Shown in pieces: positions 3,001 through 41,500 of a DNA stretch of 64,000 bases. Source of the DNA: Phaeosaccion multiseriatum (Eukaryota > Protista > Ochrophyta, other classes); assembly GCA_965112735.1 (NCBI GenBank), contig OZ218965.1:682001-746000 (forward strand). The letters are read 5' to 3'. Each line of letters starts with the position of its first letter. The first letter of the stretch is position 1. A model generated the notes under the pieces. It was not told the origin of the DNA. It did not search any database and was given only the letters and a program-made list of their open reading frames with translations. The position numbers and the translations under genes are program-made.

Positions 3001-6000
3001 AAGGTGCAGGGGGCGATAAACTTGCACGAGCTTTCTTTGGCTTGGGCGAAGGAGGACGGGCGCACTCCTGGCCTTGACTTTTTCTTTTGCTTCACATCAA
3101 TGGCCGGAGTACTGGGCAACGCTGGACAGGCCAACTACGCTGCGGCGAACGCGGCTGTGGACGGGCTGATGCGGCACAGGCGACGCCTCGGGCTGGCAGG
3201 GACGTCATTGCAGTGGGGGCCGTGGGCTGACGTGGGTATGGCAGCCCAGCTTGACGTGGTTCAAAAGCAGTTGGAGCTTGCGGGTGTGGGCACGGTGTCA
3301 GCTGAGCTGGGCATGTCAGCTCTCGATGCTACTGCAATGCCGTCAGCGTCTTTGGGTGATGTGGCTGTCCTACCTGGCATGGACTGGGCCAAGTTTGCGG
3401 GCAGCTTGGGGGCATCCCGCAGATCGCCCCTGCTGTCAGGGCTAGTCTCAACAGCAGCAGGCCCGTCCAGTCACACCGAACTCAACAATGAAGTACACGA
3501 GGCGCTCTTGAGACTGCCTCCTGTTGAGCGACAGCAATCAGTGCGACTGGCGGTGCTTGATATGGCCAAAGACCTACTTGGAGAGGATGCCGAAGAGCTG
3601 GACGAGAATACTCCTTTGATGGAAGCAGGTCTTGACTCTTTGTCAACAGTGGAGCTGCGCGGCCGGCTACAGGCTCGCTTCGGGGTTGTAGTGACCACTG
3701 ACGTGCTCTTCGCTTATCCCACGGTAGCGGCGTTGGCAGTGTGGATCGAAGCGGAGGTGCTTGGAGAGATAGAGGAACCCTCTAGCAGTCGCTCTGCGGC
3801 GACCACTGCTGAAGCGCACCGCACTGACTCAAGGGCGCCGCTGGCCGTCGTCGGTATCGCCTGTCGCTTCCCTGGAGGGGTTAAGAGCCCCGAGGACTTC
3901 TGGGCCATGCTCTGTGCAGGGACAGACTGTATTGGAGCCAGCCCTGTTGGTCGCTGGGCCGAGGAGGGTCAACAGCGGTGGCAAGGGGGCTTCATTGATG
4001 GAGTGGAGGCTTTTGACAACACCTTCTTCGGCATCTCTGCGGCCGAGGCGGGTGCCATGGACCCTCATCAGCGCGTCATGCTGGAGGTGGGGTACGAGGC
4101 TCTGCACAGGGCGGGATACCGCAAGGATACACTACATGGCAGCAACACCGGTGTGTTCGTGGGTGTGTCCGGCAGCGAGTGGGGCTCAGTGGTAGACGAT
4201 GCGAACAAGGGCGCGTACTCCGTCATGGGCACGTCCAATGCAAGTCCAGCAAATCGGTTGTCTTACGTGCTGGGCCTTGGAGGGCCGAGCATGAGTGTCG
4301 ACACGGCGTGCTCGTCGTCATTGGTGGCACTGGAAGGGGCCTGCAGCAGCTTGCGGCTGGGTAAGTGTGACATCGCCCTGGTCGGAGGCGTCAACTTGCT
4401 GCTGGGTACACCGTCGTTCGAGGCCCTCGCCGAAGGAGGTTTCCTGAGCCTTGACTGGTAAGTGCGTGTCTCTTTTGTGTGCGTAGGAGCTTCTTCTTGG
4501 GGCCGCTATGAGAGCCAGATCAAACTGTCTCAAAGGCCCCTGTTGCTGATGTCTTCACTTTTGCAAACCCACAATTTCTCATGGTCAGGCGCTGTAAGAC
4601 GTTCGACGCTGCGGCCAACGGTTATGTTCGAGGTGAGGGCTGCGGCGCCGTGGTGCTGAAGCGACTGGACGATGCAGAGGCCAATGGGGACCACATCCTC
4701 GCTGTCGTCAATGGCTGCGCTGCGAACCACAACGGTAGAAGTTTGCGCTACACCGCCCCGAGCCCTACTGCTCAGCAGCGTCTGATGGAGCAGGCACTGG
4801 CGGAGGCCGGCTTGAGTGGTCATGAGGTTGATTACGTGGAGGCACACGGCACCGGGACTTCTCTCGGCGACCCCATCGAGATGAGTGCTTTGAGGGCCGT
4901 GTATGGCCGTGGCCGCGAGGAAGCTCGGCCCCTCGTGGTTGGGGCGGTGAAGACCAATATCGGGCATCTAGAGGGTGCGTCCGGAATCGCTGGCCTCATC
5001 AAAGCTCTGCTGGTCCTTCAGCACGGATCTGCTCCCCCAAATCTCCACATGAAGAAGCTCAATCCCGACCTTCGCTTGGATGGCTTTTCAGTGACTTTGC
5101 CGTCTGCCATGGTGCCACTGAGTGCCAAGGATGGGGAGAGGCGCACTGCTGCTGTAAGCTCCTTCGGTGCTGGTGGTGCCAACGTCCATGCGGTGCTGAG
5201 CAGCTTCGGACCGACGATGGCAGCGGAGGGCGAGAGGGAAGCCTTGCTGCGGCTGGATGGGCAGCAAAGCCACAAAATCGCTCCAGTGGCATTCTTGTTC
5301 ACAGGACAGGGCTCGCAGTACGTGGGTATGGGCAGAGAGCTGTACGAGAAGGAGGGCGTGTTCCGCGAGTGCGTGCAGCGGTGCAGTACGCTGCTCATGG
5401 AGCGGGCTTGGCTGGACAAGTCTGTGGTGGAGCTCATGTACCCTGCCGCCGCTGAGGACGGGGACGAGGAGGAGGAGGAGGAGACTGCACAAGCGCTGCT
5501 GAAGGAGACACGCTACTGCCAGCCGTGCCTATTTGTGCTGGAGTACGCCCTGTGTGAGCTGTGGAAGTCGGAGGGCGTGGAGCCGTCCATGGTGATGGGC
5601 CACAGCCTGGGCGAGGTGGTGGCGGCGTGCGTGGCTGGCGTCATGTCGCTGGAGGACGGGCTGATGCTGTCCGCCAAGAGAGGAGCCGCCATGCAAGCTT
5701 GCCCCGAGGGCAAGGGAGTGATGTTCGCAGTGAGGGCAGGCAAGGAGGCGACTTTGGCAAGCATCGACGCTGCGAGGCTGGCAGGTGAGGTGGTGCTGGC
5801 GTCGTCGAATGGACCGAGCGCGAGCGTGGTCTCTGGAGGTCGCAGCGCCGTGGACAAGGTCGTGGAGAAGCTCACGGCAGATGGGGTGGGCTGCAAGGCC
5901 CTGGAGGTGTCGCACGCCTTCCACTCCCCTCTGATGGAGCCCGCTGTACGTGCGCTGGAGGAGGTTCTGAGGCAGGTGTCATTCAGCGCCCCACGCATTC

Positions 6001-9000
6001 CCCTGGTGTCCAACGTGTCGGGTGAGGTGGTCAAGGCGGAGGAGGTGACGCAGGCGACGTATTGGATGCGACACATGCTGTCACCAGTGCTATTCGCAGA
6101 AGGCATCCACACGCTGGTGGAGCACTGGATGGGAGACGGGAGAGGCGCTGACCTGAGCATCATTGAGGTGGGCCCCAACCCTGTGCTGAGCAGTATGGGA
6201 GCCAAGTGCGAGCGTCGCGAGGGGGTGGCTTGGATCTCTTCACTCACGCGCGGGAAGAGCTCCGAGGATTCGTTTCGATTGGGTCTGAGCACAGTGCAGC
6301 AGCAGGAAAGTACGGGTAAGGAGCACAACCTGTTCCCAACGCGCAAAGCCTTTCCTTGGTACACAGCGCGAGCCACAGAGGCACCTCAGACGCGGAGTGA
6401 AGCTGAGCAGGGCCCGCTCTATGTCGTTGAGTGGGAGGCGATGGAGGTGCCCACGACGTCGCAGCAGGCTTTGCTGACCGGCAGCCTTCCGTGGCTCATC
6501 GTTTTGCCCCAGACAGCCGAAGGGCAGCACGCATCGAGCAACCACAGAGCCTTGGAAGCTGTCCAAAGAGCGGCGACAGCAAGTGGTGTAGAGGTGCACG
6601 TATTGGAGGCGATCGGTTCAGACGCGCAGCCCCGTGGGTCCCATCTCTTCTACTTGACGTCAGCAACGGGCTCTGCTACGGATGGGGCAATCCACTTTGT
6701 GCAAACTGTGCAGAGCTTAGACGGGGACGCGGCAGTGATGCCGATCACCGTGGTGACAACGGGTGTGTACAGCGGTGCTGGTTGGGAGGACAGCTGGGCC
6801 GTGGGACTGGTGAGAAGCGTCCGCCTGGAGCGGGGCGACCTCGATGTGAACCACATCGACCTTGAATATGCCATGTCTCCACAGTCTGAGAATGCTCGAC
6901 CTAGCGTAGAGGAGATGGAAGCCCAAACTGTCTCCCAGGCTGTGACGCTGGCTGCAGGAGCCCGAGACGGAGGGCGAGGTGTGGACCTGCGGGTTCGAGG
7001 GTGTGAGATCCTTGCTCCGAGGCTGGTGCCCAGTACACTCCATCTGACATCGGCAGGAGTCGATCGCTTCACGTGCAGGGAGGATGGGACCTACCTGATC
7101 AGCGGTGGTCTCGGGGGGCTGGGGCTGGCGACGGCGAATCACTTGGTCTGCCAGGGCGCTCGACACCTGCTCCTCCTATCTCGAAGCGGCCGGGCGGCGG
7201 AGGAAGTTTCAGAGCTGTGGCAGGCCCTGCAGAGCATGGAGAATATCACCGCTGTGGCCGTGGCCTGCGATGTGTCCGACATGCATCAGCTTCGAGACGC
7301 TGTGGCAACCGCTTTGGTGGGCTTGCCTGCCGTGCGGGGTGTGATTCACGCAGCAGGGGTGACTGGCGCAAAAGGGGTGTTGTCTGGCGAGACGGAAGAG
7401 AACGTGCGAAATGTCTTTGCCGCCAAGGTCCAGGGAGGCTGGAATCTCCACGCGCTCTCCCTTGAGTGGGCAGTGAGCGGCAGGGAGGAGATCGACTTCT
7501 TCATCTCGTACTCTTCGACATCAGCTTTGCTTGGCTTGTCCAATCAGGGCGCCTATGCCGGGGCCAACGCTGCTTTAGACGGGCTGATGCGGTACCGCCG
7601 ACACCAGCTTGGGCTGCCCGCTTCCAACCTGCAGTGGGGCGCATGGGGCGACGTGGGTATGGCTGCGCGGTCTGGAGTGACGTCACAAGCTACGGAGATG
7701 GCCGGAGTGGGCCTGATCTCATCGGCGCTGGGTATGAAGGCGTTGGATGCCGTTGTAAGCCAGACGCATGCCAACGTGCACGAGGTGGCGGTGATGCCGG
7801 ACATGATGTGGGAGAGGTTCAGAGCGAGCTTGGCCCCTGTGCACAGCTATCTCCTCGGGAAATTGACGGACTGCAGGGAAAGTGGTGATGCCTCAAAAGC
7901 CTACCGCGTCAATGCCGAGGTGCGGGAGGAGCTCCTGCTCTTGCCGGAGTCAGCACGGCGGGAGAGGATCGAGCAGATCCTGACGGACATGGCGGTCGAG
8001 TGCGTTGGCGAGAACTTCACCTTGGCACCAACGATGCCCTTGATGGAGGCCGGACTCGATTCGATGGCGTCCGTGGAGTTTCGCAATCGAATCGAAGCCT
8101 GGTGTGGTGTCACCGTTTCGAATGGCGCCTTCTTCTCGTATCCATCGGTGTCTGCAATGGCCGCGTGGCTCGAGGCCCAGATTCTTGAGGTCCCGCGTGA
8201 TGCAAAGCGTGAAGAGGTGCTGACACGACGGCGCTTGTCCTCGGACTCTCGAGCCCCCATCGCTGTCGTGAGTATGGCGTGTCGCTTTCCCGGCGGAGCC
8301 AACAGCCCGGAGCAGCTCTGGTCGCTGCTGTGCGAGGGCAGAGACTGCATCACGGCAGCACCATACGACAGGTGGGAGAGCAAGGCGGGCGAGCAGGAGC
8401 TGCAGGGAGGGTTCATCGAGGGCGTGGAGATGTTTGACAATGCCTTCTTTGGTATCAGTGCTGCCGAGGCAGAGGCAATGGACCCCAACCAGCGCCTCAT
8501 GCTGGAGGTGGCCTTCGAGGCCTTCCATCGCGCCGGCCACAGCAAGAGCAGCCTGCGGGGCAGCAACACCGGCGTATTCGTGGGCCTGTCAGACACGGAC
8601 TGGGGCTTCGTGGCGGGAGATGCTGCTCAGGGCACCTACGGTGGTATGGGCGTGACGGCTTCGAACATTGCCAATCGCGTATCCTACACTCTGGGTCTCT
8701 GCGGCCCCAGTGCGTTGATGCAGACAGCATGCTCGTCGTCCCTGGTGGCTCTGGACGCTGCTTGCAGCAACCTCCGCCTGGGCAAGTGCGACTCGGCGGT
8801 GGTCGGTGGCGTGAACCTGCTGCTCGGAAAGAGCACCTTTCAGTCCTTGATTGCGGGGACCTTCCTTTCCTCCGACTGGTAAGTCGCATCTCGTTGTGCT
8901 GTGGACGCGAAGAAGAAGTCTCTCGCTTGGACAGCTCGTTCTCGAGCTCATCTGTACTTATGCAATGAGAACTTCCCCACCCCACCCCACCCCCCCCTCT

Positions 9001-12000
9001 CCAATCTTCCACCTTCCTCCGCCTCGTCGCAGGCGCTGCAAGACGTTTGACGCGTCGGCCAATGGTTATGTCAGAGGCGAAGGATGTGGTGCCATTGTGC
9101 TGAAGCGTTTTGATGATGCTGTGTCCAGCGGGGACACTGTATTGGCGGTGATTGAGGGCTGTGCTGTCAACCACAATGGGGCCAGCGCTCGTCTGACCGC
9201 ACCCAGTCCTCTTGCTCAGCAGCAGCTCCTGTCTGCCGCTCTGACAGAGGCGGGAAGGGACCCCGCAGAGGTGAGCTTCGTGGAGGCGCACGGCACGGGA
9301 ACGGCGCTGGGAGACCCTATAGAGATGAGCGCCCTCAAGGCCGTGTACTGCGGACCGGAGCGCGGCGAGGAAAACGCGTTGGTGGTGGGTGCGGTGAAGA
9401 CCAACCTCGGACACCTGGAGGGCGCTGCAGGCATTGCAGGTCTCATCAAGACCGTACTGGTGCTGCAGCACCGCGTCGCCCCTCCGAACCTGCATTTGAA
9501 GGACATCAACCCGGGGCTGGAGCTCGCGGACGTCCCTGTGACGTTGCCTGCGAACATGGTGCCAGTGGGTAGAGGCGGGCACACAGGAGCGCTCGTTGCT
9601 GCCGTGAGCTCGTTTGGCTCCGGTGGAAGCAATGCTCACGCCGTGCTATCCGGTCCCAGAGCTGGGAGTACTGCCATGAATGTTTACGGAGAGGGCGTCA
9701 GCGTCAGGCATGATCTTGACAAGGACAAGGAGTCAGAGCGTGATGCATTGTACCCCACACGCCGGGCTTTTCGCTGGTTCAGGCCTCCACGGGCGTTCTT
9801 GCCGAGTGGCGAGCTGTCCCAAGAGGGAGAAGGAATGCGCCTCTCCAGCCCCTTCTCGCCTCACCTCAAGGACCTTCTCAAGGACCATGCCGTCAACAAT
9901 GTGGTGATCATTCCGGGGGTGACGTACATTGAAGTGGGCGTCGTGGCTGCTCTAGGAGGAAGACAGCTCGGGGTGGATCAGCATGTAGTCCTGCAAGGAG
10001 CCAACTTTGTGGCTCCGTTGGAGATTGAGGGTTTCCAGCACACGGGCACGGACCAAGCACAGAGCCGCAGTACTATTGTCTGTGACGGCTTGAGTGCTCT
10101 GTACGCGGCAGATGGAAGCATGCAGTTTTTCGGAGGTGCCAAGGGTGACAAGGGAACAACCGCGAGGATGGACTTCGTGTCCGTCACAGATGGAGCTGAG
10201 CCGCGTCACAAGCTCGATGTAGAGGGAGTCAAAGAACGCGTAGGGACGGTGGACTTGGCCCGCAGCCTGTACGAGGCAATGGCGGATGCCAACTTCAACT
10301 ATGGCCCTCGCTTTGAGCGGAATTTACAAATGTTCGCCAATGACGGAGAGGTACTATCGGTCGTGCGTGCTCTGGACTCGGAGCTTTGCGAGCCTTGGGA
10401 GGCGACGGGCTTTGCTCTGCACCCTGCGGTGCTCGACAATGCAACTCACTCCATGCTACACGCAATCCCACGCCAGCTGTTGGAAGAAAGAGGCGGAGCT
10501 CCATTCTTGCCCGTTGGTTTCGACGAGGCTGTCGTCCTCAGTGTCATCACAGGAGCAAAGGTGTGGGTGCACACGACGCTCACTGAAGTGGAAGCGAAGG
10601 GCAACAGCATCAAGTTTGACATCAAGATTGCCGATTTCGAGAGCAGCCAGGTTCTGGTGGAGATGCGTGGATTCCGCGCTCAGCGAGCGAGAGGCTTCGC
10701 TCGCTCCAATCCGCTTCGTCGGGCGATGTACACGCTGGAGTGGCAGGCCACTGAGTCAGCCGTACCTGCACAGCGACCTCATCATGATAGTGAGGCGGTG
10801 CGGCAGAAGTGGCTCGTGTTTAGTGCACAGGACCAGACGGAGAGTGAGACTGAGATCATTGCGGCAGTGCGGCGCTCTGTTCCAGAGGGCGTGGACGTAC
10901 ACCCTCGATACGTAGGGGTGGGCGGCTCTTGGGACGACGGTGCTCTTCTTCTTGGAGAGGACGAGTGGACTCGAGTCTTGTACGTGCTGATCCCCAGGGA
11001 TGGCGAAGAAGAAGCAGAAGGGTTCCAGCAAGCACGAGCGGCCTACGCTCTGTTATCGCTACTCAGGGGCCTGTCCACTGCGTCGAGTGTGTCGCTGACG
11101 GTTTTGACGAGAGGCGTCCAAAGCGGTGAGGACTGGCGTGACAGCTGGGTGATAGGTTTGGTGCGGACTGCGAGGATGGAGCACCCCTCCATGCAGATTG
11201 GTGTGCTGGACCTGAGCGACAAGAAGGTCCAAGACAGCGAGCTTGCCTTAGGCTTGGCCTTCCCCGCTACCACAGATGATGTGTGGGTACGCGATGGGCA
11301 GTGCTTGACGCCTCAGCTTACACGCCAGGCCCTGCAGCTTCCCTTCTCACTTGACTTGAAGGCAAGAGGCAGCATCGCCAACGCTTTCGCCCTTCGTGAT
11401 GATGTGAACGCTGGCAAGCATCGGCCCCTCGACCCAGCTGGCAGCTCGGTAGAGGTTGCAGTGAGGGCCGTTGGGCTGAACTTCCGAGACGTGCTGAACG
11501 TTCTGGATATGTACCCTGGTGACCCTGGAGATCCCTGCTCCGAGTTTGCCGGGGAAGTGATCAGTGTGGGAGGAAACTCGCGCTTCAGCGTCGGCGACGC
11601 TGTGTTTGGCTTTGCGGATACGGGATGTTTGCGCACGTATGTGGCGACAAGTGACGCGTGCCTGGCCGTGATGCCATCCGTGCTGAGCTTCGAGCAGGCA
11701 GCAGCACTTCCCACGGTGATCTTGACGGTAATGAGGGCCTTCCATGACCTCAAGGCTGGAGAGAAGGTGTTGATTCACGCCGCATCTGGCGGTGTGGGCC
11801 TAGCCGCTGTGCAGTACGCCCAGCGGGTCGGCGCAGAGGTGTACGCCACTGCCGGTGCTGCTGTCAAGCATGACTTCCTCCGGAGCTTGGGAGTGGAGCG
11901 CATTGCGTCTTCAAGAGACGCAGAGGCATTCAAGCAGTCCATGGGTGAGGTGAAGGTCGATGTGGTGCTCAACTCTCTGAGCGAGGATTACATTCCCTTC

Positions 12001-15000
12001 TCTTTGGACATGCTGAGCGAGGGAGGCAGATTCGTCGAGATTGGGAAGCGAGGCGTGTGGAGTCACGAGCAGATGCGCACCGCCCGGCCCGATGTGGCAT
12101 ACAATCTCGTCGCTGTGGACACCATCATCAGCTCTGACCTCTCGGCAGGTGAGCCAGGCTGGATCAGTGATGGGCTGCAGCGCATTGCGGAAGCGTGTAT
12201 GTCTGGGGCTACGCAGCCATTGCCCGTCACGCCCTTCGACATACGAGGCGAGACCCCCAAGGCCATGGTGTTTATGATGGAAGCGCGGCACATCGGCAAG
12301 ATAGTGCTCACCAATCCCCCGTACGGTGTGCCAGTCGTGTCGGATGGCACGTACGTCATCAGCGGCGGTCTGGGGGCTCTCGGCCTCGTGACGGCTCAGC
12401 ACCTCGCGTCGAGGGGCGCTCGTCACCTGGTGCTGCTGTCGAGGAGTGGGAAGGTCGCCGAGAGCATGACCGAGCAGTGGGAGCAGCTTCAGAAGACGTC
12501 GCTGTTGACCATACATGCTCCAACTTGTGATGTCGCTGACGCCAAGGCCCTTCGGACTTGCCTAGGAGGTGTGCTGCCTCTGCTGCCCCCCGTACGCGGT
12601 GTGGTGCATGCCGCCGGGGTGCTGGATGATAAGCTGCTGGGAGAGCAAACGGTGGAGAGCGTGACGAACGTGTTCCGACCCAAGGTGCAGGGGGCGATAA
12701 ACTTGCACGAGCTTTCTTTGGCTTGGGCGAAGGAGGACGGGCGCACTCCTGGCCTTGACTTTTTCTTTTGCTTCACATCAATGGCCGGAGTACTGGGCAA
12801 CGCTGGACAGGCCAACTACGCTGCGGCGAATGCGGCTGTGGATGGGCTGATGCGGCACAGGCGACGCCTCGGGCTCGCAGGGATGTCATTGCAGTGGGGG
12901 CCGTGGGCTGATGTGGGTATGGCAGCCCAGCTTGACGTGGTTCAAAAGCAGTTGGAGTTAGCGGGTGTGGGCACGGTGTCAGCTGAGCTGGGCATGGCTG
13001 CCTTAGATGCCGCTGCGATGTCGTCAACGTCTTTGGGCGATGTGACTGTTCTGCCTGGCATGGACTGGGTCAAGTTTGCAGACAGCCTGGGGTTGTCCCA
13101 CAGTCCGCCGCTACTATCAGGGCTAGTCTCAGCAGCCGCAGCAGGCTCGTCGAGCAACACCGAAGTCAACAAAGAAGTGCGTGAGGAGCTGTTGGGACTG
13201 TCCCCAGGAGACCGAACACACGTGGTGAGCCTTGCGGTGATGGATATCGCCAAGGACCTGATCGGGGAGAACGGCGAAGGGCTGAAAGACACCACTCCTC
13301 TGATGGAGGCAGGCCTCGATTCCTTGGCAACGGTGGAGATGCGCGGTCGACTGCAGGCTCGCTTTGGGGTGAATGTGACTAGCGATGTACTCTTCTCGTA
13401 TCCAACGGTAGCGGCGCTCGCGGCGTGGATCGAAGAGGAAGTGCTTAGTGAGGCGATAGCGCCTCACGAAGTTACAGGACGGAATGGCGGGAAAGAAGAT
13501 GAAGCACAGCCGCTAGTCTATGCTGAGCTCGAGGACGATCAGTCTCTCCACCAGGCACAAGGAGAGCAGCGCCGCCGTCGTGGGCTGGCAGTGGTGGGCA
13601 TGGCTTGTCGCTTCCCGGGGGGAGTGACCGACCCTGGCGAGTTCTGGGGGAATGTTGTTGATGGAGTGGACTGTGCCACTCGGCTCTCCTTCGAGGGGTG
13701 GGGCGAGGAAACCGCAGGGCTGCACGCGGGCTTACTGGATGACGTCGAAAGCTTTGACAATGTACTCTTTGGCATTTCGTCCCGCGAGGCCAGCACCATG
13801 GACCCGAATCAGCGGTTGATGCTCCAAGTAGCGTACGAAGCACTTGTAGAGGCGGGCTTTGCAGGCTTTGCGCAAGGTGACGCCGAAGCAGAAGAGCATG
13901 GCGGCAAAGGACAGAGCAAGTATGCCATGAAGGGCTCAGACACGGGCGTCTTCATCGGTCTATCCGGCAGTGACTGGGCGACAATGCAGACAGACAGCGG
14001 AGAGAGGCCCGATGCGTACACCCTTGGAGGAACGAGTGCTTCTCTGGTGGCCGGACGCATCAGCAATCGGCTTGGACTCATGGGGCCAAGCTTTACGCTG
14101 GACACTGCGTGCTCGAGCTCACTTGTTGCGCTGGAGGCTGCGTGCGACAAGCTCAGACTGGGCAAATGCAAGACAGCCGTAGTCGGAGGAGTCAATTTGC
14201 TGCTCCATCCCCGATCCTTTGGCACCCTCCGAAAGGCCGGTCTGCTCTCTAAGAAAGGGTAAGAGTAGGGGACGGCTGCATCTTATGTGTTGCAAAAGAT
14301 TGCTTTATTGCTTGGGTCGCTCCTCTAACTCATTGTCATCGCTTCCTTCCTCCTGTCTTGCTCCTATCCATCTCAGTCGCACGGCCTCCTTTGCCGCCGG
14401 AGCCGATGGTTATGTCCGAGCGGAAGGCTGCGGAGCTGTGGTGCTGAAGCGCCTCTCGGACGCGGAAGCGGACCATGACAACATTCTGGCGGTCATTGAA
14501 GGATGCGCAGTCAACCACAACGGGCAAAGCGCGCAGATGACTGCCCCCAAGGGCGTGGCGCAGCGAGAGGTCATGCGCAGGGCGTTGAGAGACGCAAATC
14601 GCCGCGCCTGTGAAGTGGGATACGTGGAGGCACACGGGACGGGCACGGTGTTGGGCGACAGCATTGAGATGAGCGCTTTGCATGGGGTCTACCAGGAGGA
14701 GGAGCAATGGGGCGCTGACAAAAAGGGGGGTGACGAAAGGGGGGTGTATCCGCTTCGCGTGGGTGCGGTGAAGACCAGCCTGGGACATATGGAGGGTGCA
14801 TCGGGACTGGGGCAGCTCATTAAGGCTATCTTGGTCCTTCAGCACCAGCAGACACCGCCCAACCTGCATGGAGAGCACTTGTCCCCAGAGCTCGGCTACA
14901 TTGAGGAGTCGCGCCTCGCCCTCTGCTCGGAGCTCAGCGCTTGGAAGGCTCCTGTGGACCTGAAGGGGGATAGTAGCAGCAGTAGCGAGGAGGGGGGGGG

Positions 15001-15314
15001 GGCGCGAGCTGGTGCAGGCACGCTCATCGCAGCGGTGCACTCCTATGGCGTGGGCGGAACCAATGCTCACGTAATCTTGAGTAATTGGGGCGCAGCGGCG
15101 TTGCCGAGGGGGATAGGGCGTGAAGGCAGAGCTGAAGAGAAGGAGACTGCAGGGCCTCCATTGGTTTTGAAGTTCTCCGCTCGCTACCAGCCAAAGAACC
15201 CCACGCAAAGCGTCCGAAGGGTGATCGGGATCGAAGAAGACGTGCACGAGAAGGCAGTTCAAGCTTGCCTGGAGATCGCAGCTCTTTTCCAGCGGGAGAG
15301 GCAACAGGAGCAGG

Positions 15315-15346
<32 letters not shown>

Positions 15347-18283
15347 CGGATGAGAGAGAGGAGGGCTGTCTGTCTTCAGGAGGAGGCGGACCTCGAGGCC
15401 CAGCTCCAAGCTGTTGGCGCTGAGACGAACATCAGCAGCACTACCTCCTTCATGGAGCTGGGCATGGACTCCCTGGCCGTTGTGCAGCTGGTTAATACGC
15501 TGCAGGAGCAGTTTGAGCTGCAGGAGGAGCTGCCCCTTGCAGAGGTGCTTCAGAACCCTACACCAGAGGGCATCGCCGCACTAGTTGTGGAGCAGAGACA
15601 ACAAGGTCTTACTGGTGGGGGGGAAGGAGAGCACAACTACTGCAGCAGCGTGCCTGCTCACGAGAAGACGGAGGAGGAGGAGCCGCTGATGTGCACGAAG
15701 ATGATGTCTTCTGTGGTATTCAAGGTGACGCAAGTGGTGCTCATTGCGGTGCTCTTGGCGCATGTCTTCGCTTGCATGATCCTGCCCTACCGCTACCTCC
15801 GCTGGCTCAAGACTGACTCCGGCATCGAGACTTCGGTGTGGGTGGGGAAGGACTTGAGTCAATTCGCCGATCCGGAGTCCTCTTACGCCTCTCCAGGTGG
15901 AGTTGTGGGTTGGGGGCCTCTGGTCTCTTTCAGTATTGTCCTGTGGTTTCTGACGTACTCCGCTTCCATCGTGTGCGTCAAGTGGCTTGTCGTGGGGACG
16001 TACTTTGAGGCGACCATTCCAATTCATGCATCGTACTATCATCGCTGGTGGTACGTGAATGCGTGTATCAAAGTGTGGCAAGTGGGTGGCGGCTTTCTTA
16101 CCCTCGGCACACCCGGCATCACTTTGTTCTACAAGCTGCTGGGTGCCGACGTCTCCTGGCGCTGCTCCATTTCCACCTTTCTGCGAGAGTTTGACCTCAT
16201 CACGATTGGAGCCGGCGCTTCGGTGACTGGCGCGCTGTACCCTCGGTGCTTCACACCGTCAAGCATGGTTTTTCGCCGTATTGTTGTGGGGGCTGGCGCA
16301 GAGGTGGAGTCAGGGGCTGTGGTGTACGGCGGGGTGACGGTGGGTGAGGGCACCCGCATCGCTCGCGTATCCGTCGTCGCCCCGATGACTCGCATTCCTG
16401 CTGGCGATGGCGTGTGGGAGGGAAACCCAGCTCGTCGGAGGGCACAGCAGAGCTGCAGGAGCGAGGAGCGCGACGGAGGAGCTGCTGTTGTGGTCGACGC
16501 TGACAGAGAACTAGAAGGAAGCACCGAACGAGTCAGCTACAGAGGCGGATCAGCAGAAGATGCTGTCGCGCTTCTGCAAGGCTTGGCACGTATGGGGCTG
16601 ATTCTTGCCTCGGTCATGCTCACGGCCTTTTTTAGCTGGATGCCCGCCGTTGCGTACACCTTCCTTGGTGTGTCAAGAGACTTTCGATACGCAGGAGTCA
16701 TGAGCACTGTGTTGAGGGTGTACGGGGCCCTCCTGACCCTTGCCCTGTACCTGGTCCTGCTCAAGTGGGTCATTGCGCCGAGCTGCTTCCTTCGACCCGG
16801 CGTGTACACTGACAACTTCTGGACGGCTCTCCGTCGATGGTACCTCGGCAAGCTTCACAGCCAAGTGGCGGGCTATGTTCTTGTCTTCGCCCGCTGGCGC
16901 CTGTTCGACTGGTGGGGCAAGGCTCTGGGTGTGCGCATGGGAAGGGGGGCTATCAACTCGGGTGATGGCCTGTACAATCCCGAAACGGCCCACCTCATTA
17001 CGTTTGGTAAGACAGGAGGACAGAGCCCGGTTGGGGAGTGTGTGTAGGCGGTTAGGGGGGTGGGCTTGTTGGTACTACCCTACCCTCTATTTGTGGTGAT
17101 GACTCGGAGCGAGGCTGGACCGAATGCTGGTACGATGCTGCGTCGTCTTCGTTCTCTTGTCCCTTCTAAACGCCCTGACTTGTCTTGTACCACCGCCTAC
17201 TCCACAGGGAATGGTGCCTTTTCGTCGTATGCTGAACTTGCCACGGATGAGCCGCTGAGGGCCACTGCCAACATCCCTGTGGGGGCAAGACGGGTGCGAG
17301 GGACCTGCACCGTTGGGGACGGAGCGTTCCTCGGGTTTAGGTCCATCATGGAGCCTGGTGCTGCCATTCCTGCTCAGTCACATGTTGAAATGTTCACGGC
17401 TGTAGCACCTGAGGACACGGTCGTGTCAATATCCTGGGGGCGGGGAGCAGTGGGTGCAGGGGGAGAGGATGCGGCCATACTCACCGCAGGAGACGTTCAG
17501 CGCTCGGCCGCCTTTGTTGCCAGAGAGATTTGGGGCACGGTGCTGTGGCTGGCAGCCCATTTTGGGAGTCTGTTGGTGGTGGTGGAGATTGGGAGGCTTT
17601 TAAACCAAAGCGTGGCAGAGGAGCGGGGCATGAGCTTCGAGGCCATGCTGCCCCTGTACGGGGCCGTGTGCGGGTGTGCAGGAGCCCTTACCCTCACCCT
17701 TCTCATGGTGGCTTCGAAATGGCTGCTTGTCGGCGACTTCAGCCGAGGCGCGGACCCAAACACCGGGGCGTGTATGTCCTCCCAGGATATCTATCGGAGC
17801 GCACGAACGCAATACTTCCGTCTTTTGACCAGGCTGCGCCATTTCTTCCTGCGGTACATTCTGTCGCCTTTGTTCTGCGGTACATGGCTGTACAATATGT
17901 ACATTCGAGCGTCGAGCTCGCGGCCGAAGGACATCTCACTAGAGGCACTGGTGTTGGCCGCCGATGTGTTTGACTTTGACTTTCTCACCTTGGAGGCGGG
18001 TGCCATACTTGACATGGGTAGTGAAGTCATGTGTCACGTGCTTCGCCCAAGAGCGGGTAGTGCTGCTGGGGAAGACAGCACTACCGGGCTGCTGGTCATG
18101 TCCCCCTTTAGAGTGGAGGCAGGGGCAGTACTTCACCCCCACGCCTTTGTCACCCACGGCACGGTCGGCAGTAGGGCCGAGCTCTTCGCCTACAGTCCGC
18201 CTCTCATGGGGCAGAGGCTCCGGGACGGAGGCAGGTATGGCGGCCGCGGAGTGCCTGGCTTGATTAAAAGCAACTGGTTGTGA
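1..18283 (+). CDS. Giant modular type I polyketide synthase (5'-truncated), exons <1-4457, 4589-8878, 9033-14258, 14377-17006, 17208-18283; DH-ER-KR-ACP/KS-AT-KR-ACP/KS-DH-ER-KR-ACP/KS-ACP/Pls-like membrane terminal domain
   Basis: Exons sum to 17679 nt = 5893 codons, and all four GT..AG junctions preserve frame. KS motifs: DTACSSS/QTACSSS, EAHGTGT, KTNIGH/KTNLGH/KTSLGH. AT motifs: FTGQGSQ, GHSLGE, HAFHS. DH motifs: HAINNVVIIP/HAVNNVVIIP and HPAVLD. ER: LIHAASGGVG. KR: ISGGLGALG, YAAAN. ACP: GLDSL/GLDSM/GMDSL. Confidence 0.95.
4458..4588 (+). other. Spliceosomal intron 1 of PKS (phase 2, inside KS)
   Basis: TG|GTAAGT ... GGTCAG|G CGC TGT AAG restores LSLDW-RCKTFD. Confidence 0.9.
8879..9032 (+). 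other. Spliceosomal intron 2 of PKS (phase 2, same KS position)
   Basis: TG|GTAAGT ... TCGCAG|G CGC TGC AAG restores LSSDW-RCKTFD. Confidence 0.9.
14259..14376 (+). other. Spliceosomal intron 3 of PKS (phase 2, same KS position)
   Basis: GG|GTAAGA ... TCTCAG|T CGC ACG restores LSKKG-RTASF. Confidence 0.9.
15700..18283 (+). other. Pls/PosA-type NRPS terminal domain (three TM-pair + left-handed beta-helix-like repeats) at PKS C-terminus
   Basis: Three repeats, each with hydrophobic helices followed by KWLVVG..YYHRWW / KWVIAP..RPGVY..LRRWY / KWLLVG. Then FYKLLGADV / WGKALGVRMG / YNMYIRA, DLITIGAGA / LITFGNGAF / DFLTLEAGA, and WEGNPA. This matches the remembered pattern of the Pls C1-C3 region. 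Confidence 0.8.
17007..17207 (+). other. Spliceosomal intron 4 of PKS (phase 1, in terminal domain)
   Basis: TTT G|GTAAGA ... CCACAG|GG AAT GGT restores LITFG-NGAF, a hexapeptide (LbH)-like rung. Confidence 0.85.
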
Positions 18284-18589
18284 GGCTGTGAGGCTGCTGG
18301 AGAAGCTTGACGAGTCTCTCATTTATAGAGTAAAGACTTGGAGAGACGCAGTACGAGGTCTCAGACTTTCTCGTGTAGTTTCGTCTCCTCACTTGCGCAG
18401 AGCCATGTCCATACGACAGTAAAAAGTAGTGTGAAGACAGCACCAGTGACGGAAAGGACAGCCGTACTATGTCCACGATTCGCCCCTGCACGTGACATGG
18501 GCGCCTCCCACCTCAAACCATTTCACTGGACAGTAGTACTTACCTAAGAGAAGGAGAGGAAGAAATAATGATTACTTTGTTCCTACATT

Positions 18590-19000
18590 CCTTGCTTGCT
18601 TGCTTGCTTGCTTCCTTCCTTCCTTCCTTCCTTCCTTCCTTCCTTCCTTCCTTCCTTCCTTCCTTCCTTCCTTCCTTCTTTCCTTACTTACTTCCTTCCT
18701 TCCTTCCTTCCTTTTTCCTTTCTCCCTTTCTTCCTTGCTTGCTTCCTTCCTTGCTTCCTTCCTTCCATCCTTCCTTCCATCCTCCTTTTCGTGCTTGCTT
18801 CCTTCCATCCTTCTTCAAATCCTTCCTTTCCTTGCTTCCTTCCTTCCTTCCTTCCTTCCTTCCTTCCTTCCTTCCATCCTTCCTTCCTTCTTTCCTCCCT
18901 TACTTCCTTCCATCCACTAAGCCTCCTTTCCTTACTTGCTTCATAGCCGCAAAGCTTGATTCCTTCCATCCTTCTGCAATTTTTTTTTCCTTGCTTGCTT
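18590..19000. repeat. Degenerate (CCTT)n/(CTTG)n microsatellite
   Basis: Direct reading of the sequence. Confidence 0.95.
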
Positions 19001-19009
19001 CATAGCTGC

Positions 19010-19770
19010 AACACTGCCATCGTCTGCCATCGCGAGCGCTATATTCGGCACCACCACCTCCTCCTCCTCCTCCTCCTCCTCCTCCTCCTCCTCCTCCTCC
19101 TCCTCCTGTGGGCCCACTTGTTGGGCAATGTTCTTGTTGGTAATCCTTGCCATTACCTCTCTCAAGTTACGCTAGTCCAAGAAAGGGGGAAAAAAAAGCA
19201 CCACGTGTGTGTGCCTCCGGCGCTGGTCTGGCCTCGGCCCAGGCAATACACCCGGCCGTCTGCTGAGCAGCTTTGTGGGGGCAGTGCTTCGAGGGAGTCC
19301 CTCCTTCCATGCGCAAAGCTCGCTTGGGTGTCTCTGGGCCTTCCCCTCCTCCAGCGAGGTCACAAGTCTGGCTCTCTGCCGTGCACTGCTGCACTGATCA
19401 GACTCTCCGTCACCCTCTCCTCTCCGCCCTCTCGTCCCTGTATGCCGCTCTGCGCATGACACGCTTCAACGCCTCGAGGGAGAGCTTGTCGCGTGGCTGC
19501 CTCGCCATGCATGGCTGGTATCTCTTGAGCATCTCCAGCTCCATCTCCTGGACTGTTTCGTACTGCGTGCCTGCGGGCACGTGTACCGCGAGCGTGCGCA
19601 GGAGAGTGCTCCATCTCTGGTACGTGTTTGGCCAATGGAGCCAGCCGGCCGGCCGGTTGTCCCGCAGCCAGCCAGCAAGCGCTGCGCGCAAGCCAGCTCC
19701 GGAAAGTTCTCCTCCGCATCCTCCAGTCTCTGCCGCGCGCCTCGTCTGGGCTCTAGAAGCCAACAAGTGA
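19010..19770 (-). pseudogene. Degenerate coding fragment, possibly a hAT-like transposase C-terminal remnant
   Basis: Broken ORFs with coding-like composition. WSTLLRTLAVHVPAGT..E..PRDKLSLEALKRVM loosely resembles the hAT dimerisation-domain pattern; in-frame stop at 19410-19412. Confidence 0.25.
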
Positions 19771-28155: not shown

Positions 28156-31100
28156 ACACACTCACGCACGCACACACACGTACGCACTCACGTGGCAGCG
28201 ACCAGCGCGAAGCAAACGTTGGCATTTGGGGCCCTCTGGAGGGAGGAGGAGCACTTGCCGGGCACCGCTCGCAGCCCCTGCCGAGGGGAGAGAGAGGGTT
28301 AGAGAGTCAGAGAGTCAGAGAGTTAGAGAGTCAGATCAAGCGCTACAACTTCGCCTCTCTTTCGCATGGACAGCTGGGGGATTGTGTGCGCGCGTGTGTG
28401 TGTGCGTGTGTGTGCGAGTGTGTGCGTGTGTGCGCGAGTGGGCAAGGAGCAAAAGGAGTCATTGCACTCAATTGTGCAACTGCAAACGAAGCCCTCCTCT
28501 CCTCTCCCCTCCAATATTATATCGCCACCACAACCATCAGGAACTTGCTGACAAGACTGAGCTGAGACGATGACGATGAACCTATCATTCTTCCATAAGA
28601 ACATACTTCGTACGTACCTCCGTGGGCATGGCGGTGCTCTCCTTGTCGTTGAAGGCCCTTCCCGGAGCCGTGTAGAAGATCATCCTCCCATCCGGAGAGA
28701 GCCTCACCACGCGATGATGAGGCTTGCCCTTACGGCCCCACTTAAGCAACGACACCCCTCCCGACAGCTGAGCGGCAAACTCTCTGGCCTCCGCATTGCC
28801 CAGCAGGTCAGAGCTCAGCCTCCGTGGGCGCGTGTGTGCCGCCGCTTGCGCCACTATATTAGGATTGGGACTGTCCTCTCCACCGACGGTCCTGACACCA
28901 GTGCCGACGGTCCTGACACCAGTGCTGCCGCTGCTGCTCAAGGCGCGCTTCCCCTTTCCCTTCCTGCGCAGCAAAGAGCCGCTCAGCCCGAAGGACCTCT
29001 TGCCGGGCCACGTGCTTGACATGTTGGTGGTCGCGGGGGGCGTGTCTAGTTGCCAGCTGTCACCCCCTCCCTCGCCCTCCCCTTCCTCCCCCCCCTTCCC
29101 CCCCTCCGCGACTTGCCGTGCCAACGACGCGGCGGCTCCCTCTGCGTCCCCCTCCTCCCCCCCGCGTCCCACCGTCTCCTCGTCCTCCTCTCCGGTGGTC
29201 CTCTCCTCCTTCTCAGCTGCCGTAAGGTGCTTGCCCTGCCCCGCTCTCTCTGCCACATCACCTCCTTTGGTCTCCAACCCATCCTCATTATCATTGCCGT
29301 TACTAATGTCATTGCTTGAGTCTGGGGAGATCCTCCCGGCTGCCCCTCCACCGTGATGATGTCCGTCACCGCCGCTCACCCGCCGAGTCCTCCCGAGCAG
29401 CTTGACCTTGGCGAGGCGGTGTGAAAGCCTTTGCAGGGAGGGGCTACCCTGCCCATTGCCTGCATCTCCTCCTCCCCTCCCTCCCCCCCCCCCCCCTCCT
29501 CCTCCTCCTCCTCCTCCTCCTCCTCCTCCTCCTCCTCCTTCTCCGCATGCTGTCGGAGGGACCCCCCCGCCTTGTTGGGTGGTGGGAATCGACGCCTTGT
29601 TCAGGAGCGCCACGTTCAACTTGTCCTCCTCTTGCTCCTCTACCTCCCCTTCCTCTTCGCCGTTCTGCTGTTCCTTCTCCCGCTCCTCCTTCGCCTCCTG
29701 CTCCTCCTTCTCCTCCTCCTCCTCCTCCTCGTCCTCCTCCTCCTCCTCCTCCTCCTCCTCCTCCTGCTCCTCCTCCTCCTCCTCCTCCTGCTCCTCCTCC
29801 TCCTCCTCCTCCTGCTCCTGCTCCTGCTCTATGATGCCCGCACCACTACTGCTCCTGCCACCATGTCCTTCCCCCGTCCTTTGCTCTCCCCCCTGCTGGT
29901 GAGGCCCTTTGAGTACGTCTTCCTCCACTTGTGTTACGCTCACTCCTTGCGCCTCCTCCTGCTCCTCTTCCTGCTCCTCTTCCTGCTCCTCTTCCTCCTG
30001 CTCCTCTTCCTGCTCCTCCTCCGCCTCCTGCTCCTCCTCTTCCTGCTCCTCTTCCTGCTCCTCTTCCTGCTCCTCCTCCTCCTGCTGCTCCTCCTCCTCC
30101 TCCTCCTCCTCCTCCTCCTCCTCCTCCTCCCCCCCACCCCCCCGTGCTCTACCTATCCAACTCGCGTCATCGCGGGTCTTCGCCAGCATTGATCTGTCTG
30201 CGGCACTATGGCACAACGCCGAGTAGGACCCCCCCTCTGCTGCTGCTTGTCTCGCACAACCCCGCCCTGCTGGCAGAGGAGAGGGATGCGCCATAACCGC
30301 CGCTTCTGATGCTATTGCAGGGGCCCGGTCCGCCGCCTTCACCGAGCCCCTTCGGACAGGGGAAGACTCAGCTGCAGTCCTCTCTGCCCCCCCTCCCCCC
30401 CCCCCCCAACCACCACCACCACCACCACCTCCTCCTCCTCCTCCTCCTCCTCCTCCTCCTCCTCCTCCTCCTCCTCCTCCTCCTCCTCCTCCTCCTCCTC
30501 CTCCTCCTCCTCCTCCTCCTCCTCCTCCTCCTCCTCCTCCTCCTCCTCCTCCTCCTCCTCCTCCTCCTCCTCCTCCTCCTCCTCCTCCTCCTCCTCCTCC
30601 TCCTCCTCCTCCTCCTCCTAAGCGTCCCTCCTCCCCATCCCCTTCCCCGTGCTCTATCCCCTTGCCGCCCGACCGCAGGCTGTCCAACGCCACCGCCAAT
30701 GCCTCGATGGTTGCCTCCTTGGCCTCGGCCTCCCTCCTCCACTCGAGTGCGTCCTTCTCTGCCTGGGCCAGCATGCTGTACGCGCCCGCAGCACTCACCA
30801 GAGAAGCCTTTGCTTTCCCGAGCTCCTCCTCGAGCGCCGCTGCGCGTTGGATCCACGCCTGACTGCACGCAAGTGTGCTTCGCTGCTCGCTCAGCAGCTC
30901 CTCAGTGCGAGCCCTACGGAGTGTTTTAGAGGAGCAGAGAGCAGAGAGCAATGGGGGCCAAGAGCAAAGAGCAAAAGAGCAAAGAGTAGGGTCGCATCGT
31001 GGGGGCAGAGGAGAAGGCCAGAAGGGGGACCGCAGGGCGTGAGCGCTGGTGGGGAGAGCAGGCGTAGCGACTCATCTCCCCTATTAGCAATGATGCAGTA

Positions 31101-38517: not shown

Positions 38518-41500
38518 GCAATGCCGCTCCCGTCCACGTCACTTCTCGAGCTCGAGCAAGAGGAAGGACACGTCTCAGGAGCGCGATAGAGTGAGTAAGA
38601 AGATATCAGTTCGTGTCAGAGAGTGTGTGCCCGAGTGACGGACTGACCTGCTCAAAGGCGTCTCTCACGGCAAGGCCGTTGCCAATGACGCTGAGGGGGC
38701 TTCCATCCCCCTCCCTCGCTGCCCTCATGCATGCGTAGTGCCTCTTGAGCAGGAAGCCCACCTGCCCGGCAAGCTTCTCCGACTGTCTACGCACCTCCTG
38801 CCTCTGCCCGAGCACCTGAGAGAGAGAGAGAGATGGAGAGGGGTGGGAGAGAGTGAGGGAGGGAAAGAGAGAGAGATGGAGAGGGGTTGGAGAGAGTGAG
38901 GGAGGGAGAGGGAGAGAGGGGGAAAGGGTGGGAGAGAGTGAGGGAGGGTGAGGGAGAGAGGGGGACAGGGGTGGGATAGTGAGGGAGGGAGGGAGAGAGG
39001 GGCGGAGGGAGCGAGAGCAAGGGATGTGGTGCAGGGGCATGCGTAGGGCTAAGCTCCGTCCTCCCTCCCTCCCTCCCTCCCTCCCACCCACCTCATCCAC
39101 CGCCTTGGCCGCCTGCTTGATGCTGCTGCTCGCCTCGGAAACCAAGGCCTTCACCTCCTCCCCACGCCCGCCCGGAGTCCCAACACCCCTGCTTCCTCCT
39201 GCTGTTGGTCCAGACGAGGAGAGGGGCGCGAAGGCCCCTTGGCCGAGGGTGGAGGCGAGCAGGTTGGAGGGGGTGAGGAAGGCGTTGGGGCCAGCCGACA
39301 CGCAAGAGGCACGGGCCACACGAAGGGCCTCGGTGGCGGTTTCGGCAGAGAACTTGACAGAGCGATCCTGCTCCAACAGGCTCTCCTACAGGAGGGGAGG
39401 AAGGGAAGGAAGGAGGGAGGGAGAGAGGAAGGGAGGAGGGGAGGGAGGGAGGGAGGGAGGGAGGGAGGAGGGGAGGGAGGGAGGGAGGGAGGGAGGAGGG
39501 GAGGGAGGGAGGGAGGGAGGAAGGGAGGGAGGGAGGGAGGAGGGGAGGGAGGAAGGGAGGGAGGAAGGGAGGGAGGAAGGGAGGCTGAGGGGGTGGACAA
39601 AACAAAACCAAACACAGCATCTCCTCCAGAGGTCCACAGCACACCCACCCGCCTCCCCTCCCCGTGTACCAGCCACTCAATCACTCAATCACTCACTCAC
39701 TCTTGCTGACTTCGACACATACACACTCCCACCCTCCCTCCCTCGCCGCCCCCCTCCCTCCGTCCCTCAGTCACTCACCTGCCCCGCCGTCTGGCACACT
39801 GCCTCAAGCTCCTCCCCCATTCCATCCAACACCCTCAGACACTTGCGATAACCGTCCAAAGCAGCGTCGTACTCCCGCTTGGCCAGGTTGGTGGTGGACT
39901 GCAACTGTCCCACGGTCTCTGCAGCGGCGGCGATGGCTTGCTCGACTTTGAGTTCGCTAGCCCATGTGTTGGCGACGGCTGCAGCCCGCCGGTTCTCTTG
40001 CTCCTCCTCCCCCGCCACACCACCTCCTCCTCCGGAGGTGGCAACGGCGTCGAGCATTCCCAATCCTTCCTCGTCCCCCTCCTGCTCCTCCTCTTCTTCC
40101 TCCTCTTCCTCCTCCTGATCCTGATCCTTCTCCCCGTGCTTGTCCTCCTCCTCCTTCTCCTTCTCCTCCTCCTTCTCCTCCTGCTCCGCCCCAAAGTCCG
40201 TAAAGAGCTTATGTGCCACCGTCACCACCTCACATGCCCGCTTCACATCCGCCTCACACAGCTGCACCAACCCCGGCCCCGATGCGCTAATCATCGCCAC
40301 CAAGCCCTGCAAGTGCAACAACGCCCCTGCCAGGGCCTCCCTCTGCATCGCCCTCTTACGCACTGCCAAGGTCCCTGCCTCCTCCCACAAGGCCGTTGCG
40401 GTCTCTGCCTTTGCCGCTGCCCGACGGAAGCACTCGAGCTCCTCCATCGTCCTTGCCATTGTATCCACGACACCCCCTCCACCCCCACTCCACCCTGCCT
40501 GTCCTTCGGTGGCGGAGGTTAAAGAGAGGGTCGACCTCAGCCTTCGCTCGCCCCTCTGCTCCTCCTCCACAGCGGCCGAGGAGGCCAGCGTGGCGCTGCG
40601 CTGCTCGTAAGCGTGTTGGGCACCTTGATAAGCCTCTCTCGCCTTAGCAAGGGCCTCCTCCACAGTCTTGGCATCATTCGCCGCCGCCTTCCCTTTCACC
40701 CGACCCCCTCCGAAGCTGCCCATAAGCAGCTCCACTCTGGACTCGAGGCTCTGCAGTCGCAGTAACGCCTCCTCCAACAGCTGAGTGAGGGAGGCGTCTT
40801 CCCTCCTCTCCGTATCCGCTCTTCGTGCAGCCTCCGCCAGGCCCGTCTCGGCCTTTTGCACCGCCGCTTCGGCCGCATTGACATGCTTGGACAGTTTGGT
40901 GTGGAGCATCGCCGTTGACTCCCGGACCGCCCGCTCCCCCGCCCCCGCCGCACCTCCTCCTCCCCTCGCCCCTCTTCCTCCTTCCTCCTCCTCTCCTCCC
41001 CCCACTCCCACCACCTGGGGCTCACTCTCGAGCTCCGAGTTGAGGCGATCAAGCGCGGCATTGGCCTCGGCAAGGGCAAGCTCCGAGTTGGCATGGAAGC
41101 CCGACTGGCGCTGACCGAAGATCGTCTGCCTCTGACCGGAGCGGAGAGGGGCGGACCTGTCCCCGACCAATCCGCCCCCCACTCCCTTGTGCTGTACCTG
41201 CCTTGCCACAGAGAGCCTCTTGGACAAGGCCATGGATCTCCTCCTCGACGAGCTCCGAAGCTTCTCCGCCCCCTCCGCCGCGCCCGTCGCCAGGACCAGA
41301 GCCTCTTCCGCCGCTCGCACCTCCCTCTCTGCCCCCGCCACCGCCTCCCGCAGCGCGCTGGCGGTCATGTTGGTGATACTACTCTGACCGTCGTCGTCGC
41401 CGTCGCCATTGCTGATGCTACTCTTGTTGGTGGTGCTACTGCTGCTGCCAGCCTGTGCCACAGCAGCAGCTGCCCTTGAGACGGCCGAGGAGGCGGAGAG

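Follow-up and report, generated by a model that had tools for sequence, protein, structure and literature searches.

A Pls/PosA-type membrane domain at the end of a giant algal polyketide synthase, with a possible role in chain release by acyl transfer

In a 64,000-nucleotide stretch of the ochrophyte Phaeosaccion multiseriatum (contig OZ218965.1, positions 682,001 to 746,000 of the forward strand; the whole stretch is hereafter called the window), a giant modular polyketide synthase (PKS) gene on the + strand ends, at window position 18283, in a membrane domain related to the C-terminal region of Pls and PosA, the enzymes that make epsilon-poly-L-lysine in Streptomyces albulus and delta-poly-L-ornithine in Acinetobacter baumannii. 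By sequence comparison, this terminal domain belongs to a clade, eukaryotic in all members with a traceable source, that is distinct from the bacterial polymerases and whose members follow an acyl carrier protein (ACP) loaded by a fatty acyl-AMP ligase (FAAL) or by a PKS. On balance, we think that the domain probably releases the finished acyl chain at the membrane, by transferring it to a separate acceptor.

The + strand of the window holds a single long PKS reading frame that is already open at base 1 and is interrupted by short introns only; the gene, a very large type I PKS gene of which the window has the 3' end, begins beyond the left window edge. Pfam domains follow one another in the order ...DH-ER-KR-ACP / KS-AT-KR-ACP / KS-DH-ER-KR-ACP / KS-ACP (DH, dehydratase; ER, enoylreductase; KR, ketoreductase; KS, ketosynthase; AT, acyltransferase), an order in which the modules KS-DH-ER-KR-ACP and KS-ACP are without an AT. 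The last KS has an intact catalytic triad in the KS alignment (Cys of DTACSSS, His of EAHGTGT and His of LGHMEG), and a Pfam search of the open reading frame (ORF) between this KS and the ACP found no AT, KR, DH or ER. An earlier note on this DNA, made from the sequence alone, had placed the ACP with its GMDSL motif and the first repeats of the terminal region in one frame. This is what we find: ORF 14219-17047 carries the C-terminal half of the KS, the ACP and the first repeats, and it is joined to ORF 17060-18283 through a predicted 201-nucleotide GT..AG intron (17007-17207) whose removal keeps the frame open. The note's terminal region of about 790 residues stands as an extended region, with the corrections that it is 799 residues long after splicing and is split by this intron. 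In agreement with the note's statement that no thioesterase (TE), reductase (R) or condensation (C) domain follows the last KS-ACP, Pfam searches gave no match to thioesterase, NAD_binding_4 or condensation domains in ORFs 14219-17044 and 17060-18280 or in the downstream ORFs to 20154, that is, through 2 kb beyond the gene.

The terminal region consists of two transmembrane (TM) helices followed by a left-handed beta-helix (LbH), repeated three times, and its three beta-helix units, C1, C2 and C3, can be aligned with one another. Hydropathy gives six TM segments in three pairs, the number the earlier note had expected, and each pair ends in KW(L/V) and leads into a beta-helix unit, which bears out the note's three repeats of paired hydrophobic helices and hexapeptide-like rungs. 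The motifs that it quoted (KWLVVG, RWW, YKLLGADV, DLITIGAG, WEGNPA and VMCHV) are all in the translation. Since the TM helices are paired, the ACP should lie on the same side of the membrane as C1, C2 and C3. The invariant Asp of C1 sits in FDLITIG (codon 16193-16195); the spliced C2 junction AHLITF|GNGAFSS aligns with AHLVTIGNGCF of Amorphochlora and AHLIQIGCRSH of Ectocarpus; and the protein ends where its homologues end, right after the family's G-x-P motif.

Such a fusion might be an artefact of the gene model, with a separate stand-alone terminal-domain gene adjoining the PKS, or of misassembly. No RNA evidence was found for the gene, and stand-alone or fragmentary terminal-domain proteins are present in databases. 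Three observations argue the other way: the ACP and the first one and a half units lie in one unbroken ORF, without a stop or a start signal separating them, DNA contigs from four sequencing runs of one sample span the junctions without a gap, and the same fusion recurs in a transcript of Stygiella and in a eukaryotic contig that has no introns, both described below. We therefore give an artefact very little credence. Over positions 12700-18560, the four runs show allelic single-nucleotide polymorphisms and cover the intron at 17007-17207 at exon depth, and so behave as genomic DNA. A run-derived joint at 14263>14362 is not of the GT..AG type and was set aside as cross-mapping of paralogous KS exons. 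The contigs built from these runs carry many alternative bases near half depth (for example at 14094, 14139, 16171 and 17983), and their depth climbs 30- to 50-fold at 12700-13090; together, the half-depth variants and the rise in depth suggest heterozygosity, paralogous PKS copies with near-identical KR/ACP segments, or both.

The earlier note had likened the terminal region to the C-terminal membrane region of Pls and PosA, and profile searches of its two exon pieces support this homology. The NCBIfam model of the Pls/PosA terminal domain, TIGR02353, matches the first piece of the region with an E-value of 1.8e-17 (63 bits) and the second piece with 1.8e-5 (23.3 bits), both well below the curated cut-off of this equivalog-domain model (423.1 bits). 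For comparison, true bacterial members reach 590-622 bits with this model, and the FAAL-type relatives from eukaryotes 115-142 bits. Judged by these scores, the domain is a relative of the TIGR02353 family that stands outside its curated membership.

A phmmer search of 1.84 billion protein representatives returned 972 relatives at E<=1e-3, the best of them an Ectocarpus protein (33% identity, E 1.5e-59), a similarity well beyond what chance would give; a word-based protein search gave six distant bacterial-type matches and no close relative. The best 150 of the 972 matches fall in two classes. One is of the amino-acid adenylation type, about 1,300-1,900 residues long, and comprises the genuine Pls/PosA enzymes of bacteria, such as those of Sulfuriferula and Beijerinckiaceae. 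The other has a FAAL, recognised by NCBIfam FAAL models, and an ACP ahead of the terminal domain. All eight FAAL- or PKS-type proteins with a traceable source are eukaryotic, coming from Ectocarpus, Chrysophaeum, Amorphochlora, Bigelowiella, Picozoa, Salpingoeca, Stygiella and one metagenome contig that also bears TPX2 and RGS genes. The window protein resembles the FAAL-ACP proteins (such as Ectocarpus siliculosus CBJ30872, annotated as a long-chain acyl-CoA synthetase, Chrysophaeum KAJ8604521, and those of Bigelowiella, Amorphochlora and Salpingoeca) in its clade, in the signature residues described below and in having an acyl-loaded ACP directly upstream of the terminal domain, but these proteins are without PKS modules, whereas the window gene has many KS, AT, DH, ER and KR modules. 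In the ESM Atlas, the cluster nearest to window positions 15650-17005 is mostly diatom, and a structural neighbour (TM-score 0.66) is a Streptophyta cluster labelled as catalase with a hexapeptide-repeat domain, which may be an unrelated plant LbH fusion.

PKS fusions to the terminal domain number two among the best 150 matches, so the arrangement in the window is not unique; the earlier note had suggested looking for such fusions in algae and protists. In Stygiella incarcerata P0115 (EP01028_P005930, 4380 residues, one transcript), the order is KS-AT-KR-ACP-KS-DH-ER-KR-ACP-terminal domain, and in P0011 (2920 residues, from an intron-less eukaryotic contig of a JGI metagenome) it is FAAL-ACP-KS-ACP-terminal domain. 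Both share with the window protein a PKS ACP followed by a membrane domain of the same clade, and P0011 also shares a last module of KS and ACP only, but the number of modules is far smaller in both. Catalytically, the window's last KS is intact, unlike that of P0011 (residues ~1205-1660, before the terminal ACP), in which FAAGS replaces HGTGT and the first catalytic His is lost; judging by this sequence, the P0011 KS seems to transfer the chain without elongating it. We considered whether the window protein and P0011 had inherited KS, ACP and terminal domain as a single block, and rejected this, since the two KSs are 37% identical, as against 49% between the window's last KS and the window's own other KSs.

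We placed the window domain in a quick maximum-likelihood tree of 73 full terminal domains (IQ-TREE, LG+G4, midpoint root, no outgroup). The tree splits in two clades, each with an SH-aLRT support of 96. The first, of 49 rows, includes all 34 amino-acid-type enzymes with an adenylation (A) domain, and the second, of 24 rows, includes all 15 FAAL-type rows, both PKS-type rows and the window. Within the second clade, the window lies in a 21-row subclade (SH-aLRT 98) and pairs with Ectocarpus (SH-aLRT 93), a pairing that is unsure because both branches are long. An N-terminal part was recognised in 17 rows of this clade, and in 15 of them it is FAAL-ACP only.

Among the 13 columns that are near-invariant in both clades, the window keeps 12, including K188/W189, R209/W211, D259 and His806 of C3. 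This last residue is the His of the VMCHV motif singled out by the earlier note, and conservation identifies it as the family's near-invariant C3 His, present in 100% of the A-domain-bearing amino-acid-type rows and 88% of the FAAL-/PKS-type rows. Of the eight signature columns of the FAAL/PKS clade (W141, G166, G225, R256, G271, A524, P840 and others), the window matches seven. Acidic columns 793, 809 and 865 are conserved in the polymerase clade and in neither the FAAL/PKS clade nor the window. They include the E of H-L-F-E-D-R: around the C3 His the window reads MCHVLRPR, and the Gln/Thr and Glu/Asp that flank the His in Q-T-H-L-F-E-D-R are replaced. It is plausible that the acidic residues of the polymerase clade are ligands for cationic diamino-acid substrates, and their loss would therefore argue for a different acceptor in the window's clade.

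The one invariant column that is lost is a C3 Gly, replaced by Ser (codon 17915-17917), and the local LGA motif of C3 is replaced as well. With the long branch of the window in the tree (1.04), these changes would suit a domain that serves mainly as a membrane anchor or is decaying, a catalytically weak or dead copy whose chain is released by a trans-acting enzyme. We regard this as unlikely: the domain retains a 799-residue open frame with one clean intron, 12 of 13 invariant residues with the His among them, and a C-terminus that falls exactly at the homologues' end.

The fold of the domain was approached through a relative. An AlphaFold2 model of the P0011 terminal domain, which is 27% identical to the first piece of the window region, was computed from a 74-row alignment and is confident (pLDDT 90.6, pTM 0.91). 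Against the Swiss-Prot AlphaFold models, it matches the PosA C-terminal domain (residues 614-1331) with a TM-score of 0.75 and an E-value of 2.7e-36, which extends the likeness of the PKS-type domain to PosA to the whole fold; against the PDB, it matches only single LbH acyltransferases, namely maltose O-acetyltransferase (MAT), galactoside O-acetyltransferase (GAT), CysE and AntD. A model of the second piece of the window region (the rest of C2, TM5-6 and C3) has a pLDDT of 77.8 and again finds PosA as its best structural match (TM-score 0.58, E 4.5e-8), one repeat out of register. A PDB sequence search found no solved structure of the Pls/PosA terminal-domain family. For PosA itself, the published prediction has three beta-helices above six bent helices in an arrangement of approximate three-fold symmetry, the beta-helices packed like those of sugar-nucleotide acyltransferases; its authors note that there is no experimental structure (Patel and Gulick, PMC10522769).

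Single units of the terminal domain match LbH O- and N-acyltransferases by Foldseek and profile comparison (MAT, GAT, CysE, AntD, QdtC and LpxD). Searched with the window sequence, the PDB gave an LbH match by phmmer (E 2.2e-4), and a Hexapep PF00132 match to C1 stayed below cut-off (E 0.0014). Searching the PDB with the C3 sequence alone found nothing; the family profile of 71 C3 units did reach LbH transferases there, with E-values down to 1.2e-14, and in its HMMER alignment the conserved His falls on a QdtC His. In the trimeric LbH acyltransferases, three helices stand round a three-fold axis with the active sites at their interfaces. The window domain resembles these enzymes (maltose and galactoside O-acetyltransferases, CysE, AntD, QdtC and LpxA/LpxD) in its LbH fold and hexapeptide rungs, but its three helices are covalently linked, non-identical and interleaved with TM hairpins, and the conserved His is on C3 only.

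In the mechanism that we propose, the terminal domain would be the release step of the assembly line, in the place of a TE or R domain. Its three beta-helices would pack as a pseudo-trimer on the cytosolic face, above the six-helix bundle, as in the AlphaFold model of P0011 and the published PosA model. The last ACP would deliver its thioester to this domain. Since its module consists of KS and ACP alone and has no KR, the thioester probably bears a 3-oxoacyl chain; with colinear processing, this chain would also have a hydroxyl at a distance of seven carbons from the thioester, which the KS-AT-KR module would have left there two modules before. Assisted by the C3 His, an amine or hydroxyl of a separate acceptor, on a lipid head group or a small molecule, would attack the thioester as nucleophile. 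This would free the polyketide in amide or ester form, at the membrane or through it; the transfer itself would take place at the cytosolic face and may be coupled to insertion into or passage through the membrane. The terminal domain of Pls and PosA, which would make an amide from a carrier-bound aminoacyl thioester and a free amine, may likewise be described as an acyl-S-carrier:nucleophile acyltransferase. Within the LbH superfamily, LpxA and LpxD use acyl-ACP donors. Since the 15 FAAL-ACP-only rows among the 17 would supply fatty acyl donors that are unable to self-polymerise, transfer to a separate acceptor is the simplest function common to the clade.

The reading that the earlier note put first is an assembly-line polymerase. 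Worked out further, this would mean that the domain adds hydroxy- or keto-acyl units made by the PKS, one after another, to a free chain, in the way that Pls adds lysine, and extrudes a polyester-like wall or extracellular polymer through the six-helix bundle. The window domain has much in common with Pls and PosA: six TM segments alternating with C1-C3, a position directly after a carrier domain without TE, R or C domain, and the family-wide invariant residues. This homology runs over the whole length, the only characterised relatives are polymerases (PMC10522769), the C3 His is retained, and the upstream KS-AT-KR module should leave a chain hydroxyl able to act as nucleophile. On the other hand, the tree separates the window's clade from all amino-acid polymerases, the TIGR02353 match, with 63 bits, stays far under the cut-off of 423, and acidic columns 793, 809 and 865 are lost. 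The partners also differ: in Pls and PosA an amino-acid A domain and a peptidyl carrier protein stand upstream, whereas the window has a PKS KS-ACP and no A domain, lies in a eukaryotic gene with introns, and has no known polymer product. Most members of the clade, moreover, are FAAL-ACP only, with acyl donors that normally carry no nucleophile, which makes transfer the simpler ancestral function. For these reasons polymerisation no longer leads; we consider it rather unlikely, and a little less likely still that the domain is a true polymerase making a membrane-extruded polyester-type polymer such as algaenan-like wall material. The second possibility raised in the note, that the domain acylates an acceptor while anchoring the synthase in a membrane, fits the clade and the FAAL-ACP architecture better.

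A hydrolytic or self-releasing end is a further alternative, in which water or an internal hydroxyl of the chain would be the nucleophile and the membrane part would serve for localisation or export only. The product would be a lactone or a 3-oxo acid, and decarboxylation of the acid could give a methyl ketone. A last module of KS-ACP with an intact triad and no KR predicts a labile 3-oxoacyl thioester, and no other release domain was found. That the LbH enzymes and Pls/PosA are transferases and not hydrolases (PMC10522769) speaks against such an end, as does the conserved and elaborate three-unit architecture on the acceptor side, which points to a bound acceptor; we judge it improbable.

Several points nevertheless weigh against transfer to a separate acceptor. 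With at least one hydroxyl in the predicted chain, from the KS-AT-KR module, self-esterification is chemically possible. No member of the FAAL/PKS clade has a known product or acceptor, and the whole-domain structural model is that of a 27%-identical relative and not of the window's own protein. The sequence was found in four runs only, all of one sample, and these behave as DNA and not as transcripts. Finally, given the Gly-to-Ser replacement and the loss of LGA in the C3 sequence, the activity may be reduced or altered.

Table 1. Features of the last PKS module and the terminal domain, in window coordinates.
Feature	Position	Strand	Evidence
Last KS, N-terminal exon part, with active-site Cys of DTACSSS	13585..14258	+	PF00109 at residues 1579-1802 of ORF 8851-14262; KS alignment
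Intron in last KS, GT..AG, 118 nt, phase 2	14259..14376	+	Sequence; junction GLLSKKG|RTASFAAGADGYVR
Last KS, C-terminal half and KS C-terminal extension	14377..15101	+	PF02801 E 9.8e-34, PF16197; alignment
Linker with poly-Gln tract	15102..15424	+	No Pfam match between KS and ACP; translation
Last ACP, phosphopantetheine Ser of GMDSL at 15470-15472	15425..15586	+	PF00550 E 6.8e-11
TM1, loop and TM2 (hairpin 1), ending in invariant K-W	15710..15982	+	Hydropathy; family alignment
C1 left-handed beta-helix unit (RWW, YKLLGADV, WEGNPA)	15983..16453	+	Hexapep PF00132; PDB LbH matches; conservation
TM3 and TM4 (hairpin 2), ending in K-W (KWVIAP)	16571..16765	+	Hydropathy; alignment
C2 beta-helix unit, first exon part, up to HLITF-G	16766..17006	+	Alignment with homologues
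Intron inside C2, GTAAGA..CCACAG, 201 nt	17007..17207	+	Sequence; open spliced frame; colinearity with homologues
C2 beta-helix unit, second exon part	17208..17470	+	Alignment; beta strands in AlphaFold2 model of second piece
TM5 and TM6 (hairpin 3), ending in KWLLVG	17528..17719	+	Hydropathy; long helices at residues 100-174 of second-piece model
C3 beta-helix unit, VMCHV His codon 18035-18037	17720..18280	+	Conservation; C3 profile against PDB; coordinates
Stop codon TGA	18281..18283	+	Alignment; downstream scan

The coordinates of the last module and the terminal domain are collected in Table 1. All three KS domains of the window carry a GT..AG intron (4458-4588, 8879-9032 and 14259-14376) at a common codon and phase, between bases 2 and 3 of the codon preceding R-C-K-T-F-D (R-T-A-S-F-A in the last KS), and this shared position fits module duplication after intron gain. 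The last KS is the most diverged of the three: it is 49% identical to the other two, as against 66% between those. Right after the 3' end of the gene (region 18568-19110) lie a (CCTT)n-type microsatellite at ~18580-18900 and a (CCT)n run at 19056-19105, which yield spurious PSFL-repeat and poly-Leu ORFs on the + strand. Nine other large ORFs of the window, on both strands and up to 788 residues long (for example 28585-30951, 39767-41611 and 45618-47105), had no match in Pfam at E<=1e-3. Possible explanations are pieces of genes read without splicing, genes peculiar to the lineage, and frames that are open by chance in GC-rich DNA. A megablast search against plasmid sequences gave no match.

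In full-text literature searches, we found no paper on a PKS or a eukaryotic FAAL-ACP protein that ends in a Pls-type terminal domain. The name TIGR02353 had no literature match, and NRPS_term_dom had one, an unannotated Cladocopium gene. A 2015 survey of algal PKSs contains no mention of hexapeptide, terminal domain or transmembrane, and a 2026 paper mentions a bacterial stand-alone Pls/PosA-type nonribosomal peptide synthetase within a hybrid lipid gene cluster, not a fusion. The PKZILLA genes were considered as the same system and set aside as different, being trans-AT with a TE. What we infer to be new is a Pls/PosA terminal domain serving as the chain-release and membrane module of a PKS.

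Little is known of the way in which giant PKSs of algae and other protists let go of their products and perhaps export them, and a recognisable TE is missing from many of these enzymes. If acyl transfer by the terminal domain is confirmed, it would be a release mechanism undescribed for any PKS in the literature searched, and it would place the end of an assembly line at the membrane. If the polymerase reading proved true instead, this would be the first assembly-line "PKS-Pls" biopolymer synthase and would give a gene handle on resistant algal wall polymers. In either case, the polymerase clade and the acyl-transfer clade form a natural contrast set for the control of polymerisation in Pls/PosA enzymes. 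The relatives described here make up a testable family, with the simple FAAL-ACP fusions of brown algae, pelagophytes, chlorarachniophytes and choanoflagellates at one end and multi-module PKSs at the other. Its products may be membrane lipids, signalling lipids or wall components.

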